Positions 44,834 to 54,200 of a stretch of 64,000 nt of DNA are shown here, one piece after another (position 1 is the stretch's first letter; each line of letters starts with the position of its first letter). The stretch spans positions 1 to 64,000 of the forward strand of contig NC_134035.1 in NCBI RefSeq assembly GCF_964204645.1, given 5' to 3'. The notes below the pieces were generated by a model. That model had not been told where the DNA came from. It was given only the letters and a program-made list of their open reading frames with translations, and searched no databases. The DNA is from Tubulanus polymorphus. Lineage: Eukaryota; Animalia; Nemertea. The position numbers and the translations under genes were made by a program.

Positions 44834-45089
44834 TGGGTACTGCAGCTATGTACCCCTTGTTCTGGGTACTGCAGCTATGTACCCCTTGTTCTGGGTACTG
44901 CAGCTATGTACCCCTTGTTCTGGATACTGCTATGTACCCCTTGTTCTGGGTACTGCAGCTATGTACCCCCAGCTCCTAGTATACTGTAATGTAGCCCCAG
45001 CTCCTAGTATACTGTAATGTAGCCCCAGCTGTGGGTACAATAATGTAGCCCCAGCAGTCGGTACAATAATGTAGCCCCAGCTGTGGGTA
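44834..45089 (+). repeat. 3'UTR minisatellite, ~28-bp unit drifting in sequence
   Basis: tgggtactgcagctatgtaccccttgttc changing to gtac/atactgtaatgtagccccagct.. Confidence 0.85.
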
Positions 45090-45552
45090 TAGTCCATACT
45101 TAAATGTTTTTTCGGAATGTTTTATGGATATTTGTTGGCTGTTAAATGTTATTTGAATCTTCTATGTGTGAATGTTATATCTATTGATAGACTATGCATT
45201 GAAAGGTTATGTCCATGTTTGTTAAAGAGCCAGTTGTTTAAAGTCAATGTTAATCCGACCTAAACTCTGTTCTACAGTTGTCAGTTGTCAGTTGAATGAA
45301 TCACTGGAAATGAAGAAATCTTTAGTCTTAACTGACAATTGTGCAACCAGGGTTCTGTTCACTAAACCCGATCAGCGTTTAACAATGTTTAAGCAACTAG
45401 CCTTCACTGAACAACGGGTGTGAAGTTACTTTTCATTTATTGTTGCATTTTAAACTCAGTGATAATGTGTGTATTTCAAACAGTAGGCTTCAATCCTGTA
45501 AGATTGAGAAAGTGCAGCTCAAATTGTTTTATGTATTGGGAGGAGTCTACTG

Positions 45553-45922
45553 CAGGGTTCATAGCAGTCCTTGAAGGTCCCTTAAAGTTCTTAAATTGGA
45601 ATGGATCAATTCAAGACCTTGAGTATCATGGAATCACTCCTTTAATCACTGTCATGGTCCTTGAATGGCATCTACCTCACCACTCTCGAGTACAATTTGA
45701 AGCTTTTGGTCACATATCATTATGGTGTACAGTATATCAGATCATTGTATTGTTAGGACTAGTACACTATAGTCTGATGGATGCTTGGTCTATGGATGGA
45801 CCCAATGTTAATTGGAAATTTTATGAACTATTGAAAAAAGCCGAGAGATTCCTTAAATCAGAGACAAAAAGGTTCCTGATACCCGTTAGATGGAATTGGG
45901 TCGTGGGATTATGAACAGACCT
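45553..45922 (+). mobile_element. Internally deleted hAT-like DNA transposon remnant
   Basis: Begins cagggttcatagcagtccttgaa.., ends ..ttatgaacagacctg (imperfect TIR). Encodes SMDGPNVNWKF, resembling a hAT-like transposase motif (recognition from memory). Confidence 0.45.
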
Positions 45923-46632
45923 GTTACTGTATTCAGATATAACATTTCAATATGTGGCGGTCGCAAACTATGCACTTATAATCACTACCAACAACAAATC
46001 AGTGCTAGGGAATAGTGGATGATGTCATAGGGGGATTTATGGAGGCAGCCATTTTCTGGGTGATTATGGTTAGAACGTAATGAAATACTGTAAACATGAA
46101 AATAATGCTAAAAACCTGAGTCCTATTGATGCTTGCTTTGTTATCGGTATTTACGTTTTTTATTGTTTTTTTTACATTTTAATTGAATAGATTTGTTAAA
46201 CTATATGCATTGTGAGTCGTTTAGGTTGATTCAGCAGGGAGGTGCACCTCCCTGGGATTCAGTTACTTTCAGTCATCCATAAAATAATATATACTTATAG
46301 AAACTTATTATTAGCGATAAATAAATGTGATCCTGTATCATCACTAGAAATCGAAGTCTATCGATACATTTTCTATTTGCCACAATTTGCAGGATGCAGA
46401 ATTTTCAGGGTTAGAGTGGGGGTTGACCAGACTTGCAGCTTGCAGCTTGCAGCTTGCGTAGAGCTCGATAGAGAAACCATGACTCCAATCCACAGCCAGC
46501 AGCTGACCACGAACCCAACTGGGCCGATCCCAGACCAGGGCCGATCGGACATATTGTGTAGTGAATATCAGTATTTCAGAATAAGATGATGACTTTATTC
46601 AAGTAAAGTACGTGTTGACATTAATCACCGAT

Positions 46633-46773
46633 TCAACCGGCCGTCATTTGTTGAAATGCGATTTGAACTTGTTCCCATAGAAACAGCCCAATTTCCTCCT
46701 TGTGTTCATCAAAAAATTTGATGGCTTCTTCGAGTGCCTTTTCAGTGAAATAACCTCCAGCAGCCGAGATGAA
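46633..46773 (-). CDS. Distal alternative terminal exon (duplicate) of the orphan secreted protein
   Basis: atttcag| FISAAGGYFTEKALEEAIKFFDEHKEEIGLFLWEQVQIAFQQMTAG*. Phase-0 acceptor; AATAAA at 46594-46599; 16/40 ungapped identity with exon 47931-48086. Confidence 0.7.
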   Translation of the reverse strand, partial: FISAAGGYFTEKALEEAIKFFDEHKEEIGLFLWEQVQIAFQQMTAG

Positions 46774-47261
46774 CTGAAATCAATGCAGGAACATGTGGGT
46801 TGTTACGGGGAGAGGAATATGGTTTTATAAATATCCCTGGACTCAGTTCCAGAGTTTTCGATTTTGAGTTGCTATTACGTACTTAAGTTCCCGATGTTTT
46901 GAGTCAAATTCACTGATCAAACTAAGGAACTGATCCTGGGGGTCGCGTCTTTAAGCCCTTGTCAAGTCTCACGTGTTAGCTCCATTTGAATTCTAATGCA
47001 TGAAAGATGACAGTAATTCCTTGTTGCAGTCGATTAAGCCACTGCTGTAGTTGTGACGATTGTTTGATGTTTTATCCAAAATATGACTTACAATTGTAAC
47101 TACTAATTGCGACCCAAAAATAAAGTCGACATCAGTAAAATGTGACGATGATGAAATCACTGCTGTACAAACGGTTTAAATTCGTCTTTCGCTGGGATCC
47201 GCCGAGCAGCGAGGATGATTCAGCATGAAGGCAGCAGCTCGTGATATTTCATAATAATTTC

Positions 47262-47826
47262 CTAAAGCAGCTATTAGAATAGCATGGACTAAAGCAGCTA
47301 ACAGAGCAGGGACTAAAAAGCAGCTAAAATAGCAGGGACTAAAAGCAGCTCACATAGCAGGGACTAAAAGCAGCTCACATAGCAGGGACTAAAGCAGCTA
47401 ACATAGCAGGGACTAAAAGCAGCTCACATAGCAGGGACTAAAAGCAGCTCACAGAGCAGGGACTAAATCAGCTAACATAGAAGAGACTAAATCAGCTAAC
47501 ATAGCAGGGACTAAAGCAGCTAAAATAGCAGGGACTAAAAGCAGCTCACATAGCAGGGACTAAAAGCAGCTCACATAGCAGGGACTAAAGCAGCTAACAT
47601 AGCAGGGACTAAAAGCAGCTCACATAGCAGGGACTAAAAGCAGCTCACAGAGCAGGGACTAAATCAGCTAACATAGAAGAGACTAAATCAGCTAACATAG
47701 CAGGGACTAAATCAGCTAACATAGCAGGGACTAAATCAGCTCACAGAGCAGGGACTAAAAGCAGCTCACAGAGCAGGGACTAAATCAGCTAACATAGCAG
47801 GGACTAAAAGCAGCTAGAATAGCAGG
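47262..47826 (+). repeat. Minisatellite, 23-25-bp unit with ~195-bp higher-order duplication
   Basis: Unit agcagggactaaa(a)(g/t)cagct(a/c)aca(t/g). The block starting cagctaaaatagc occurs at ~47321 and again at ~47517. Confidence 0.92.
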
Positions 47827-47930
47827 AAGTTGAAGCGAAGCAAAATGTACAAAAACAGCGATGAAAAAGCGCGGGATAAAATGAAAAAACACGATCCGAA
47901 TTCATAATGATTTATTTACAATTGATGACA

Positions 47931-50316
47931 TTATCGACCAATAGCTGCGGTAGAAGTGACTGTGAGGAAAGTTTGAAGGACTTGTTTGTAAATGAAAGGT
48001 CCAATTTCGTGTTTATGATCGTTGAAAAAAGTCATAGCTGTTTCTAGAACCGATTTCGCCATAGTAGTCGCAGCCGTCACCACAAACTACAAACAAAACC
48101 AACTATACAGCGCCCCCTAGCACACATATAAAGCACTTGAACATGGACCCAGTTTTACCGTCGGGTTTGACTGTATCGAAATTTAACTAATTGACAATGA
48201 ATTAATTTGACACTATCGAAAAACTATGGAAAGCGTGCTGAACATAAGACAAGTTTTTACACACAAATATACAATTAAAGCAAAGCATGGATGGAGGATT
48301 GCGCGAGCGATTAGAAAAGCAATTCCATGATAGCATAGGCAGTATTTCACCCGGTCCTGGAAGTGGTTGTTTCCACAACATATATCTCCTGGTGACAACT
48401 GGATTCCACTTACCGTAACAGCCATTTCTTTGATGATTTCCACTACCGGTTGAGACGCCTCCCAGGCAACTGACAACTTAGATTTCATCCAATCTCTGAA
48501 CGACGAGAATTTCGATCCCAATTTGTTGAATAATCCTGAATGAAATGATACTTCAGTTAACGCAGATTTTTACAATGGACACCAATTATACTTTCCACAT
48601 CAAGTCCCTGTACAGGACCATGATATATCATGAATATCTATAAATAGTGTAATTCTTGTTGCAAAAACCCGTGAGGACAAGGTGCACAGTGCAGGGCTTC
48701 ATTATATGGAAAATGAAATATCAGAATATGGCTTCAAAAACGTTGATCCTGGATCCAGCAGTTTCACAATTTAAATAATCAACTCCTAAATCATTCTATT
48801 TCTAATATTTCATTAGGCGACCTATTTGGACCCGTCGTTGTTACGGGTTCCCCTGCCTTGGGGAAACATGGCTAGGAGAGGTGGCTACCTTTCATTGTAT
48901 CAAATAGTCCATACTGTTCTCCATTCACCATTAGATGCGTTAAAGTTTTATCGGTGACCTGATCTTTTAAACCATCGAGGATTTCCTGAATCTGGTTCAG
49001 TTCTGAAATTGAAACGAAAACCACAACATTTAATCAAGATTCTTAAACTCGAGTCGTCGGAGCGTCTAATAGCAGATTGACTGAACCCGAGTTAGATTTG
49101 AATCTGAGTTAGGAAGACCGCGAGAGGACCGTGATGCTTACTGGTAGCTACTGTTGGGTGAGACTTCAGTTTCTCGATCAACTCCAGAACTTCTAATTTC
49201 GCTTTACTGTTCACCTTCCCGACAAGACCCTTTAGTTTATCGACCAATACAGCGGCGTCCTGTGCGATATCCGTACAAGCAAAAATTCATAAAGACTGAT
49301 CACAAAAATGTACAACTTTGTGGCTGACTTTTGCGGTAACTTCGAAAGCCTGTAGCTCAATAAGTTTTTGGGTTTATGAATGCGATTAAGACACAGTTGT
49401 GAAACTGGATCCAGGCAGTGGGTGATTTTACACGATGTACCTGTTTCTTCTCAGCGATTACTTGTTTCACTTTACCGGTTACATTCTTCAACACATCTCC
49501 GAGACTGATCTTAAAACTCATTCGTAACGATCTCATTAACCTATAATTAATATATTCATAATCATTATTCCATATCTATATTCAGCAATCGTGGAAAAAA
49601 GTTTTTCTCCGCATAAATTCCCTTTTTTAAGTATATGACTTCACGCCTTGCCAACCACTAATTCACTCACTTAGAAATTCATTCAATTAAATTGGTCTCC
49701 CAACTATACATGTATAAACCCCTAGTTTCTATAATTCCCTCACACCTGAACTCTATAGTGAGAGTTCGAAACGTGTCATTTTAAGTTTTTCAGTAAATAA
49801 ATTGTTAGTTTTCAAATCTTTTAAATCTGCATAGTGGGTTTTATTGTATAATCTGCTCCCGTCAGAGAGTGGCCGCATTCTACTATTTGTCATTAATGTT
49901 TAAGTAGACTGTTGGACTGGACTGGAGTAATACACGTACTGCTGCTCTTCAGAACTGATTCCCCTTTTGGAGATATGACTTTCAAGCGCATCGTTCGCTC
50001 TTCTGACCGCGAGTTCAGCAAATCCATCCAGTGCTGGAAATATAATCAAGTTTGGAATTAAAATTGCCGAAATACTCTTTCAAAAAATCATGACATTGCG
50101 ATTTTGTTTTATTGAAAATATCTTTTTATTTGTACACTAAGTGCCTTTAGGGCACTAAAGTCAAATCATAAGAAGGTTTAACAGAAGTCTCATACGACCC
50201 CCTGGGACCCCGCCTCAAAATACAAAACCTTTTGAAGCGAACTCCTGATTAAAAGCCTCGATGCTGCCAACAACAAAAACAACTGCAAAAACTGCGAGTC
50301 CAGTCTTCGAAACCAT
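47931..50316 (-). CDS. Orphan secreted amphipathic-helical precursor protein (263 aa); coding exons 50229-50316, 49940-50033, 49441-49540, 49142-49259, 48889-49002, 48414-48535, 47931-48086; probable 5'UTR exon ~50558-50640
   Basis: All six introns are GT-AG with consistent phases (1,2,0,1,1,0) and give an open frame. Signal peptide MVSKTGLAVFAVVFVVGSIEA. AATAAA at 47911-47916. Confidence 0.85.
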
Positions 50317-50825
50317 CCTGAAATTATACAATATAATCAGTCGTTATTCTATACCATACAAGGTATCAAAATATTTATGAATATCTGGTCCGTTTGTTTT
50401 TCTAAGTTGTTAACGTCAGATAAAACTATATTAACTATTTCACAGTATCGTTCACCGTTGGTTCACGTGAATCAACATTTGAGTAAAGTTAGGACGCAAA
50501 ATAACAATAATTCTTGATAGATTTTAAAATTTAGCAACAACAAAATATCTTACTTACGTGTTTGCAGAGAATTGAATAATCCAAGCCTAACCGCAGCGGA
50601 GAGAAGTATGGAGATTTTGAGAAGAAAACGTGTGTGTGAAACAGGGCTTTTATCTAATTTTAACTGATAAAACTAATGGGTTTTTATCGCCAGTGATTTA
50701 GTTTCCTTATCACTTTATTGTTAAATCATAAAATCAGGTAAAAACTTTTAACTTCACACGCGATGCACATATGAGAATTGAACGTGAAGGGGGGGGGGGT
50801 GTGGTACACACCGTGTGGCTACACA

Positions 50826-51022
50826 CTGAACTAGTCTCACGGTACGGGGCTGCTGAACTAGTCTCACGGTACGGCGCTGAACTAGTCTCACGGTACAGGG
50901 CTGAACTAGTCTCACGGTACGGGACTGCTGAACTAGTCTCACGGTACGGGACTGCTGAACTAGTCTCACGGTACGGGGCTGCTGAACTAGTCTCACGGTA
51001 CGGGACTGCTGAACTAGTCTCA
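50826..51022 (+). repeat. Minisatellite, 24/27-bp unit x ~8
   Basis: ctgaactagtctcacggtacggg(g/a)ctg repeated, between the PHF21A 3' end and the orphan gene promoter. Confidence 0.93.
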
Positions 51023-51270
51023 CTGTAAGGGTCTGTTGAGTCTTTACAGTGTTGTAGGGAACCGTAACAACGACTGGTATTCAGACTAGGGTAAAAGATG
51101 AAAATCTCCTTCAACGTAAAATCGAACTCAAGAAACAACGAAACAATTTTAAGACATGATACATAATTATTACATTCTATTACATAATTTCATCGGACAC
51201 ATGATTCATACAAAATATGACAATTAATTTTATAAAAGACACGATTGTTTGTTTGTTTGGTTTAGAGACA

Positions 51271-54200
51271 TCAGGATGTTTGAAATACTCGAATGAAGTT
51301 TTTCAGATTGTCCACTGATTGTTGATGTGATGACGACACTGTCATCAGTTCAGTTTTTTCGCGTTCCTGTTGCTGTAAGATAAACAACGAAAATAAACAA
51401 CATCAGAAATTATAATCTAGTAGAAATAAATGCTACCAATCTTAGAATAAACCTTGTATTACAAAGAAAGTTTGGTTTATGCGAGCTATGTTTAGAGACT
51501 GGATCGAGAGGTCAGTGGCTCACTAAGATTTTAAACAAGTCTTATAAGATAAGACCACTTTGACACAACTGTGCAACTGGATCTTAGGTATGCCCAAAGT
51601 TAGTCTTAATGACAATGAAGATTCAGAGTTAAGCTTGAAGATTTATTGATGAATTAATAGTTCTGAATTCACTTACTTCTAAAGTGCCGTCAAAATGCTT
51701 TAATTTCTGTTCAAGTTGTTGTTTTTCAAGGTTCAATTCAACACTTCGTTTCAGCAGTTTCTTTTTTTCTTCTTCTTTTGCTGACAATAAGAACAGCATG
51801 AAAGGATAAACAGCCGTAGCGTGACAGCACCCACACCCCAGACCCCTCTCCTATCATTCTACGTACCAGCCTTCTTAGCGATATAAGCGTGCACAGTAGA
51901 CAACTGTTCGTTGAAATGACTTGTCGAAAGTTTAACTCCGGCGGTCTGAAAAAAAATATTATAGAATCATCTAAAATCTTACCTGGCGATACCTTTGTAT
52001 CATGACTAATTGAATTCCATAAACTCAGGGCCCAGTTGCACGGTTTGGACTATCAATTCTTATTCTAATAATATCGTAGTCTTCAAATAATTAATAAGAC
52101 CAGTCTTTGATTATTGATCCATAATGGTCTTAGGCTGGTCTTAAATCTAAGCCCTTCATGTGCAACTGTTCACCTACAGTTTTATGTGAAATTCATTGTA
52201 AACACTTACTTGACATTTAGGGCAGCTCCAGAGTCCTTTAGGCACAGCAGTTAGAGGTGGTTCTAAACATTGTAAGTGATAAACTAAACTACATGAATCA
52301 CACATCAATAATTCACCACTCGACCCACAAATGCAGCAATAGTTGTCATGGTTTCCATTCTGAAATACAAACACGTTGAAATAAGTTGAAAATGCACAGT
52401 GCTCAACTAAGGTTTAATTGTGTTTGGAAATAAACTGATTCTTATAAAACTCAGAAGACAAATTATTCACACGCATTCAAGACGTTTTATTTAAACAGAC
52501 CTGAACGTCGGTGAGACCGTTTTTGTCGAACGTATGTTTGGAAGGAGAGTGATCAGGAGTTGAAGGGGGACTCGTACACGGTGACAAACATCTCTGATAT
52601 CGACCTGGAAAATATCAACATCAATCATTATATCACAAATCAAACATAGATCGACTTCGTACTCATCCACGGAGAAGGTGATGTCAGTAATTAAACTGTT
52701 GGCCCTTTGTCATTAAACTATGGCAGGATGTAATACAGCACCTACCTCGGGGTCGTTTAGATAGAGGGCTTCCTCCATAACTTCTTCTGTGTAACGGGAT
52801 GAACTACAAAATACAAACATACACATAATTCAAATCTGACATCTCATCTACAGAGAGGAGAGAATAATATTCAGGATGTCTAAGTTACCTCTGATTCGAG
52901 ATGACCCGAGTTCGCGTGACGTTTTCTATCCGAGCGCTTTCTTTGTAAATCTATAAAACATGAGTTTAGATTAATACACAGATATCCTTCACTGGATATA
53001 GAACTCAGGATCCAAATCAAAGTTCTCAGAATTTGCCACAAGAGACAAATATTTGAGGCCCGTTTATCTCAGTGGTCAGTTTGATTTTTAGAGTTTTGAT
53101 TTTCAATGTTTTGTACCTAAAGTCAGATTTTCACCAAGAACTACGGAAAGGAGTCCTGTGAACTCGACTCCACTGGATTACTATTGAGTCTGGTTCAAGA
53201 GAAAGGAGTCCTGTGAACTCGACTCCACTGGATTACTATTGAGTCTGGTTCAAGAGAAAGGAGTCCTGTGAACTCGACTCCACTGGATTACTATTGAGTC
53301 TGGTTCAAGAGAAAGGAGTCCTGTGAACTCGACTCCACTGGATTACTATTGAGTCTGGTTCAAGAGAAAGGAGTCCTGTGAACTCGACTCCACTGGATTA
53401 CTATTGAGTCTGGTTCAAGAGAAAGGAGTCCTGTGAACTCGACTCCACTGGATTACTATTGAGTCTGGTTCAAGAGAAAGGAGTCCTGTGAACTCGACTC
53501 CACTGGATTACTATTGAGTCTGGTTCAAGAGAAAGGAGTCCTGTGAACTCGACTCCACTGGATTACTATTGAGTCTGGTTCAAGAGAAAATTAAACTTCA
53601 CAAAGTGTGGAAAACTGTTTAATCAGGGCGAATGAATTACCTTTCACAGATTCGTGATTGATCAGTTCTAAAGCGGCCATAAAATCGGATTTCTAAAAAT
53701 ACAACAATCAAACATAAATAAAACTACAATGAATATAAACATTTTGGCAGAAACCCGAGATTATTAAAACACTGACCCCAGATTTTCCTTGATGCTGGTG
53801 TTGTTGATTCTGATGAGGTTGTTGTTGATGCAGCTGTTGTTTTCTCTGCGGTGGTGTACGAGATGTTGTATTGTTATCAGTAACTTTATTTGCAGCAGCA
53901 GCAGCAGCGGATTTTTGTGCATTTCGACCCGTAGCGTTTACAGAACGTGGAGATTTACCCTAAAAACAGGACAAAATCAAGTAGATTTAAACATATAAAA
54001 TTGAAAGCAGATTCTTTTCGGAGAATTTTTTATTAATGTCAAAAAATTATTTTCTGAGAATCACAGATTTTAGTTTAAACTCAATAAACTTTGCTCCTAA
54101 ACTTAGACATGGGCAACACTTGTGACTAATTTGGACAAAATCAAAATTTTGATGATTTTCTCTGATCTAGCTTTTCCGACCTCACATTTACTATTATTTT

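Follow-up and report, generated by a model that had tools for sequence, protein, structure and literature searches.

The gene LOC141912942 of the ribbon worm Tubulanus polymorphus contains, downstream of its sixth exon, two exons that could each end the coding sequence, which raises the question of whether a single splice donor serves two alternative last exons, or whether one of the two is a relic, a leftover of another gene or a fortuitous resemblance. We analyzed this locus in the window, a stretch of 64,000 nt at the start of contig NC_134035.1, and moderately favor the first answer: an ancient tandem duplication of the last exon, after which the exon-6 donor (pos. 48414) would be joined to either a proximal (7A) or a distal (7B) copy, giving alternative tails to a predicted secreted helical protein.

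Architecture of the gene and its two terminal exons

The gene has seven exons on the minus strand and an ATG at 50316. Exon 1 (50229..50316) carries this ATG and a hydrophobic, signal-peptide-like N-terminus, and its translation equals residues 1-29 of P0002, which is RefSeq XP_074660478.1; exon 2 (49940..50033) carries a dibasic KR site conserved in the family; and exon 3 (49441..49540) has AG/GT borders, as is the case throughout exons 1-6. Exons 4 (49142..49259) and 5 (48889..49002) each occur as one genomic copy, and exon 6 (48414..48535), the last shared exon, has a homologue as penultimate exon in each of two paralogous genes. The lengths of exons 1-6 add up to 636 nt, which puts the GTAAGT donor that follows 48414 in phase 0, and both 7A and 7B, read from the first base after AG, match it in phase. 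Exon 7A (47931..48086, minus strand) comprises 51 codons and a TAA stop (47933-47931), has a net charge of +1 and lies outside the RefSeq product; its AATAAA (47911..47916) is located 15 nt past the stop and is followed by a GT/T-rich stretch. Exon 7B (46633..46773, minus strand) comprises 46 codons and a TGA stop (46635-46633), has a net charge of -5 and forms the C-terminus of XP_074660478.1, with an AATAAA (46594..46599) about 34 nt past the stop. A minisatellite of twenty-two copies of a 25-nt unit (25-nt x 22; 47279..47826, no strand assigned) sits between the two terminal exons, and the introns from exon 6 to 7A and to 7B measure 327 nt and 1640 nt, respectively.

Joined translations, which were built from window coordinates and used for frame, length and local comparison with database sequences, gave predicted products of 263 aa ending in 7A and 258 aa ending in 7B, and the latter was identical to P0002 letter for letter. 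Because 7A carries a stop codon, 7A and 7B are mutually exclusive at the protein level. The initial annotation had described phase-0 acceptors fitting the donor at 48414, a separate AATAAA for each exon, these two product lengths and a far more acidic distal exon, all of which the coordinates and spliced translations bear out; its treatment of 7A as the default end differs from the public annotation, which uses distal 7B only. It had also considered an alternative upstream donor for 7B, a GTAAGT near 47090. As a coding option this donor is excluded, and with it a mini-gene of its own that would supply 7B, because no open frame runs from an ATG to a phase-0 GT at that place; between 7A and 7B there is no ATG-started phase-0 exon.

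Homology and constraint of 7A and 7B

BLASTP alignment of 7A with 7B, as a single comparison, revealed 17/45 identical and 27/45 positive residues without gaps (E 6e-12), in agreement with the gapless 16/40 noted in the initial annotation. Six-frame searches of the whole genome with either exon returned the other exon and the terminal exons of the two paralogous genes, and nothing beyond these. Comparison of the flanks of 7A and 7B showed no remaining nucleotide similarity. The two exons, the terminal exons of both paralogs and the tail of P0005, a transcript-derived homologue, all begin in the same phase and at the same alignment column. Thus 7A and 7B are true homologues, and their similarity is not due to chance.

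The two paralogs are located at 10.85 and 10.88 Mb of the T. polymorphus genome, in tandem and 28 kb apart, and each has a single terminal exon after its exon-6 homologue, at a distance of roughly 200-290 nt. Judged against this spacing, 7A lies at the ancestral intron distance. The paralog tails share 15-17/51 identical residues with 7A and 11-13/46 with 7B. The P0005 tail has the length of 7B and resembles it slightly more (20/47) than it resembles 7A (16/47). The four Tubulanus terminal exons have 8 invariant columns in common, all of them retained by 7A and by 7B; a Trp invariant in every other family tail is kept in 7B and is Tyr in 7A. Maximum-likelihood branch lengths were similar, at 1.01 for 7A, 1.58 for 7B and 1.45 for the P0005 tail, in a tail tree that is a polytomy and does not resolve the order of these three.

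Nucleotide identity between 7A and 7B at the three codon positions was 58/69/31 %, and pS was 0.79 (saturated) versus a pN of 0.39, in tests that rest on 45 codons with saturated synonymous sites. In a simulation of neutral decay at 0.75 substitutions per site, an open frame together with at least 17/45 identity was retained with a probability of 0.008; from 1.0 substitutions per site upward, this probability was at most 2e-4, and at 1.5 the simulated third-position identity (0.37) was still higher than the observed value of 0.31. Long neutral decay of a terminal exon was therefore rejected by the simulation (P <= 0.008). Both exons look selected, as the initial annotation had proposed, with a pattern over 45 codons that indicates protein-level purifying selection on each copy and that a recently silenced exon would share.

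Use of the two ends and competing explanations

The record XP_074660478.1 is a computed model whose name has no isoform tag, which indicates that the NCBI pipeline gave one product, skipping 7A. A P0002 query against a protein collection in which the RefSeq proteins of the T. polymorphus genome are included returned P0002 itself only, and a family-profile search of the collection gave only P0002 among the matches listed; an open frame of 118 aa surrounding exon 6, of which the exon part was scored, retrieved no fragments from the collection. A scan of JGI metagenomes with P0005 found its own 1068-nt contig alone and no second isoform. Three sequencing runs from one study (X1-X3), analyzed over 45000-50850, covered introns and intergenic DNA and contained no splice joints, and the sole long joint carried inserted letters, as in a ligation; these runs are DNA or Hi-C-like, not RNA. 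The switchable ends of the initial annotation therefore stand in part: the exons are homologous and exclusive and the 6-to-7B join is in the RefSeq model, but a 6-to-7A product is absent from the protein collection. Given two old, intact copies of the last exon, the gene can probably make two alternative tails; we infer this alternative use from evolutionary evidence, as distinct from a demonstration.

Under the proposed duplication, the donor at 48414 would join the 7A acceptor, 327 nt off, with cleavage following at the 7A poly(A) site, or would skip 7A and join 7B, 1640 nt off, with cleavage at the 7B poly(A) site. Exon 7A would then be spliced and translated today, competition between splicing and polyadenylation may regulate the exon choice, and the tail might tune how strongly the protein, as an apolipoprotein-like amphipathic bundle, binds lipid or membrane surfaces.

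A gene that always ends in 7B as annotated, with 7A formerly used and now skipped, either as a recently silenced relic or as a rarely used exon of no distinct function, is the alternative that we take most seriously, though we consider it unlikely. It agrees with the single RefSeq product using 7B, with the absence of a 7A product from the protein collection, with the 7B-like length and slightly greater 7B similarity of the tail of the expressed homologue P0005, and with the replacement of the family Trp by Tyr in 7A. Against it, 7A has an intact frame of 51 codons behind a canonical acceptor, with its own stop and AATAAA; it keeps all 8 invariant residues, is no more distant from the paralog tails than 7B and has the shortest branch of the three tails. 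The ancestral intron distance of 7A and the simulation, which rejects long neutral decay, also argue against it.

The converse, in which the true end is 7A at its ancestral position, the RefSeq join of exon 6 to 7B arose as an artefact of prediction and 7B was left behind as the last exon of a tandem paralog since lost, seems quite improbable to us. Paralogs of the family do lie in tandem elsewhere in the genome, the 6-to-7B intron is four times longer than any other in the gene, and XP records are computed models; yet 7B shares the constraint pattern of 7A, retains every invariant residue as well as the family Trp, and possesses a good acceptor and its own AATAAA. The 1.1 kb upstream of 7B offers no other exon with which it could be joined as coding sequence, and a predictor would presumably have little reason to bypass an intact 7A absent alignment support. 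Chance similarity of amphipathic helices, with either 7A or 7B not being an exon, would fit two short helical segments, and helical low-complexity sequence did give spurious matches (P0003 and P0004, which came from the large sequence search and were discarded as repeat-protein noise). Nevertheless, the ungapped alignment at the pairwise E value given above, the phase and start column held in common with P0005 and the terminal exons of two paralogs, and the presence of 7B in an annotated protein effectively refute this explanation. The reading that we moderately favor remains the duplicated last exon with alternative use of both copies.

Predicted protein and comparison with known systems

The protein is cysteine-free and predicted to be all-helical, with about 240 residues after removal of the signal peptide. 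The AF2 model of P0002 was all-helical (pLDDT 68.5, pTM 0.62), the region from the junction through the tail being covered by helices 181-235 and 242-256, and the 7A module modeled alone formed a helix-kink-helix (helix 2-23 and helix 25-49). From these models, 7A and 7B are each predicted to supply the second half of one long helix, followed by a turn at a conserved E-I/L-G motif and then by a final helix. The swap from 7A to 7B lowers tail hydrophobicity, and the net charge of the secreted form without signal peptide is about +7 with 7A and about +1 with 7B. The initial annotation had read the C-termini as amidation-type; both do bear a terminal Gly (..AIGR*, ..TAG*), but this is not conserved in relatives, whose ends are ..SRSA (P0005), ..GQE (P0001), ..VQE (the L009 paralog) and ..PVY (chiton).

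Searches of Pfam with every exon and four full-length relatives gave nothing above cut-off. Sub-threshold matches to PF01442 and PF07464 were obtained in relatives (P0001, E 3e-7; P0006, 1.5e-4; P0005, 0.03), those to ApoLp-III (PF07464) having E values of 0.02-0.05; the gathering threshold of the apolipoprotein families was not reached, with no match for P0002 and 30.8 bits against a cut-off of 90 for the paralog P0001. A sequence-profile search of the PDB returned nothing, a search of the ESM Atlas returned nothing above chance, and Foldseek (E >= 0.012) and VIA (Z <= 9.6), run with the moderate-confidence model, returned generic helical bundles only and no specific fold match. Alpha pore-forming toxins of the ClyA type (ClyA, Hbl, AhlC) were considered and rejected, as ClyA gave a Foldseek E of 0.024-0.15 at a TM of about 0.24 and was absent from the top VIA rows. 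Of the secreted effector in the initial annotation, secretion fits the signal-like N-terminal segment, but the effector role finds no Pfam family or specific fold match, and nothing in the analysis ties the protein to such a role or to that of a toxin. The protein is a member of an unnamed lophotrochozoan family of apolipoprotein-like helical proteins found in nemerteans and molluscs. Like the exchangeable apolipoproteins (PF01442, Apolipoprotein A1/A4/E; PF07464, ApoLp-III), it is predicted to be secreted and lacks cysteine, and it would be built from long amphipathic helices; unlike them, its family scores far under the curated cut-offs, and lipid binding is putative.

Where tandem exon duplication has produced mutually exclusive exons, the classical cases are internal and share both flanking splice sites. 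Exons 7A and 7B resemble them in being tandem, homologous, equal in phase and nearly equal in length, and in keeping frame and hydrophobic pattern despite about 60 % amino-acid divergence. The duplicated unit here is instead a terminal exon with stop and poly(A) signal, so that exclusivity would arise by termination and not by splice-site incompatibility. The two terminal exons of vertebrate CDC42 are homologous duplicates. Alternative use of these last exons yields prenylated and palmitoylated isoforms (bioRxiv 10.1101/366369; PMC6411841), and the T. polymorphus gene shares with CDC42 one upstream donor, two terminal exons each with its own stop, 3′UTR and poly(A) site, and products that differ solely in a short C-terminal module. 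In CDC42, however, both isoforms are established at the RNA and protein levels, and the chemistry of the tails is known (CAAX versus CCAX lipidation), whereas the T. polymorphus gene has a single annotated isoform and is known from genomic sequence and a RefSeq model.

A further reading, which we offer tentatively and regard as rather doubtful, is that the duplicated last exon acts as a charge switch in one member of a secreted, convertase-processed, apolipoprotein-like family of ribbon worms and a chiton, alternating a strongly cationic, more hydrophobic form (about +7) with a near-neutral one (about +1), for example a membrane-active defensive or mucus form and one for carriage or storage. 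On this reading, the duplication would date back at least to the divergence from the species that yielded the JGI transcript.

The practical value of the finding is modest, since alternative last exons are a well-known mechanism and events of this kind are known, as in CDC42. The family, which occurs in nemerteans and molluscs, is unnamed and lacks both a Pfam model and a structure. If both exons are used, the locus would correct a public annotation that gives a single product and passes over an intact exon under constraint, and it would provide a clean, small example of how duplication of a terminal exon gives one protein two tails of very different charge, in a phylum whose genes have hardly any functional annotation.

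Organization of the gene and its terminal exons

The gene is compact and lies on the minus strand, with six upstream exons at AG/GT borders (exon 1, 50316–50229; exon 2, 50033–49940; exon 3, 49540–49441; exon 4, 49259–49142; exon 5, 49002–48889; exon 6, 48535–48414). These exons sum to 636 nt, and thus the GTAAGT donor following position 48414 is in phase 0. Two candidate last coding exons, both in phase 0 and right behind an AG, lie downstream on the same strand: the proximal exon 7A (48086–47931; 51 codons and TAA), with an AATAAA at 47916–47911, and the distal exon 7B (46773–46633; 46 codons and TGA), with an AATAAA at 46599–46594. The predicted products are 263 aa long with 7A and 258 aa long with 7B; recomputation confirmed all exon coordinates, phases, AATAAA positions and product lengths of the initial annotation, which had proposed a switch between these exons. 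Because 7A carries a stop codon, translation of an mRNA with both exons would end at 7A in any case, which makes the two tails mutually exclusive.

The 7A stop and the 7B acceptor are separated by 1.16 kb, 548 bp of which is a 25-nt minisatellite (22 units, 47279–47826, with a 196-nt higher-order period) that lies downstream of the 7A poly(A) signal and upstream of exon 7B; most of its units contain an acceptor-like CTTTTAG or CTTTAG motif on the gene's strand. The upstream neighbour, a multi-exon gene also on the minus strand (about 51270–52960), encodes a PHD-type zinc finger, with the CxxC...H..C...C..C pattern in an exon at about 52360–52210. A 27-nt tandem repeat of eight units (50826–51039) lies between the two genes, and a long near-perfect tandem array of ~61-nt units (53150–53500) is located upstream of the exons of the PHD-finger gene. 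The window comprises the initial 64 kb of a contig of 13.98 Mb and thus lies at the end of a chromosome-scale contig.

Homology of and constraint on the two exons

Ungapped alignment of 7A and 7B revealed 17 identical and 27 similar residues out of 45 (BLASTP E 6e-12). When the complete 268-Mb assembly was searched in six frames with 7A or 7B as the query, the only matches were the respective other exon and two sites on the same contig, at about 10.849 and 10.876 Mb. Each of these sites is the last exon of a paralogous gene and lies a few hundred bases downstream of an exon 6 homologue; since each paralog has one terminal exon, the last-exon duplication is specific to the window gene. No nucleotide similarity is left between the flanks of 7A and 7B, indicating that the duplication is old. 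The paralogous loci (L009, G000:C11:10847206-10850325; L010, 10874898-10878026) are 28 kb apart, and in L010 the sequences corresponding to exons 5 and 6 are apparently fused into a single exon.

The initial annotation had suggested selection on both exons, and this was borne out by codon-position pattern, invariant columns, tree and simulation. Nucleotide identity between 7A and 7B was 58%, 69% and 31% at the first, second and third codon positions, the last being at the random level (pS 0.79, saturated; pN 0.39). All eight columns invariant across the four Tubulanus tails are kept in 7A and in 7B, and identity to the paralog tails was 15–17/51 for 7A and 11–13/46 for 7B. In a seven-tail maximum-likelihood tree, 7A and 7B formed an unresolved trio with the tail of P0005, a homologue known from a transcript, and the branches were similar in length (1.01, 1.58 and 1.45, respectively); neither exon evolved faster than the P0005 tail. 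Neutral decay of one copy was simulated with the other frozen, a setting generous to a relic. An open frame with 17/45 identity or more survived with a probability of 0.008 when 0.75 substitutions per site had accumulated; from 1.0 substitutions per site upward, this probability did not exceed 2e-4. Simulated third-position identity after 1.5 substitutions per site (0.37) was still higher than the observed 0.31.

No ATG-started open frame ending at a plausible phase-0 donor was found in the 1.16-kb interval between the exons. A separate coding feeder exon using the GTAAGT near 47090 was ruled out, as stops precede this donor in the relevant frame. The protein-level constraint on 7B, together with the lack of another coding feeder, implies splicing of 7B from the shared gene, and likewise of 7A. 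There is thus good support for 7A and 7B as homologous terminal exons that exclude each other and are both under constraint.

Annotated end and possible alternative use of the two exons

The four terminal exons were combined into a profile, with which 1.84 billion representative proteins were searched. P0002 (258 aa; NCBI XP_074660478.1, a computed model without an isoform tag) is identical to the model of exons 1–6 plus 7B, and P0001 (XP_074660341.1) is the paralog at 10.876 Mb. P0006 (533 aa), from the chiton Liolophura sinensis, is uncharacterized and carries two copies of the module. P0005 (255 aa) is encoded on a 1068-nt environmental contig (JGI 3300032651, Ga0314685_10204512) whose 768-nt reading frame is unbroken and intronless, so that the contig appears to represent a related animal's transcript; P0005 and the core of the window gene share 39% identity (77/196 aligned positions), and the P0005 tail agrees with 7B at 20/47 and with 7A at 16/47 positions. 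Two other rows, P0003 and P0004, were repeat-protein noise.

The initial annotation had implicitly taken 7A as the default end; the relation is the reverse, since the public model bypasses 7A and ends in 7B, leaving 7A as an unannotated extra exon. A query of 5.8 billion proteins with P0002 returned P0002 alone, although a 7A product would share 211 identical residues, so the 7A product is absent from that collection, in which a search for shorter protein fragments with exon 6 was negative as well. Three sequencing runs from one study, compared over 45000–50850, covered introns and intergenic sequence and contained no splice joints, and are thus DNA. In all three, a ~35-nt element at 46018–46052 showed many joints going back and loose ends, with a summed contig depth of ~9500 versus ~36 around it in one run; it resembles the end of a high-copy repeat.

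The main rival explanation, that splicing now bypasses 7A or the exon is silent, agrees with an annotated model ending in 7B, and we regard it as less likely. Its long-term form, neutral decay of 7A, is rejected by the sequence-based selection tests, which span only 45 codons and beyond whose reach recent silencing would fall. Present-day alternative use of 7A and 7B is plausible, and is the reading towards which we lean. The mechanism itself is already known, for example from CDC42, in which alternative last exons giving distinct C-termini are documented (10.1101/366369; PMC6411841); here a similar arrangement is proposed from sequence.

Predicted protein and possible effect of a tail swap

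The N-terminus is signal-peptide-like by sequence; the remainder is cysteine-free, and its predicted fold is all-helical. In the AF2 model of P0002 (five-sequence alignment; pLDDT 68.5, pTM 0.62), residues 181–235 form a long helix that spans the exon 6/7 junction; the chain then turns at the conserved E-I-G motif and closes with a helix at 242–256. The 7A module folded by itself gave the same helix-kink-helix. A dibasic KR about 30 residues past the signal peptide (exon 2, 49940–50033) is conserved in all relatives (P0005, P0001 and P0006), and the repeated units of the chiton protein begin after GKR, which together suggest proprotein-convertase processing in the family.

Searches revealed no Pfam match above the cut-off, no match in a PDB sequence profile search, no Foldseek match at E <= 1e-3 (top rows, designed bundles and ClyA, E 0.01–0.15, TM about 0.24) and nothing beyond chance level in the ESM Atlas; VIA gave Z <= 9.6, within the tool's reported common range for helical bundles. 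P0001 showed a sub-threshold Apolipoprotein A1/A4/E match (30.8 bits versus a cut-off of 90), and those of P0006 and P0005 were weaker. The protein is therefore apolipoprotein-like, amphipathic and helical by resemblance only, not a member of the apolipoprotein family, and nothing pointed to a toxin role or to the secreted effector role proposed initially.

By sequence, the terminus of each tail is of the Gly type (..AIGR* in 7A, ..TAG* in 7B), as had been noted in proposing amidation, but the feature is not conserved in relatives, which end in ..SRSA (P0005), ..GQE (P0001), ..VQE (L009) and ..PVY (chiton); the Gly-type ends may be a coincidence. With the signal peptide removed, the core has a net charge of +6, and the tails differ in charge and hydropathy (7A, +1, GRAVY 0.38; 7B, -5, GRAVY 0.00), which would give secreted forms of about +7 and about +1, respectively. 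In a surface-active helical protein, such a tail swap could shift the affinity for membranes or lipids or the tendency to self-associate.
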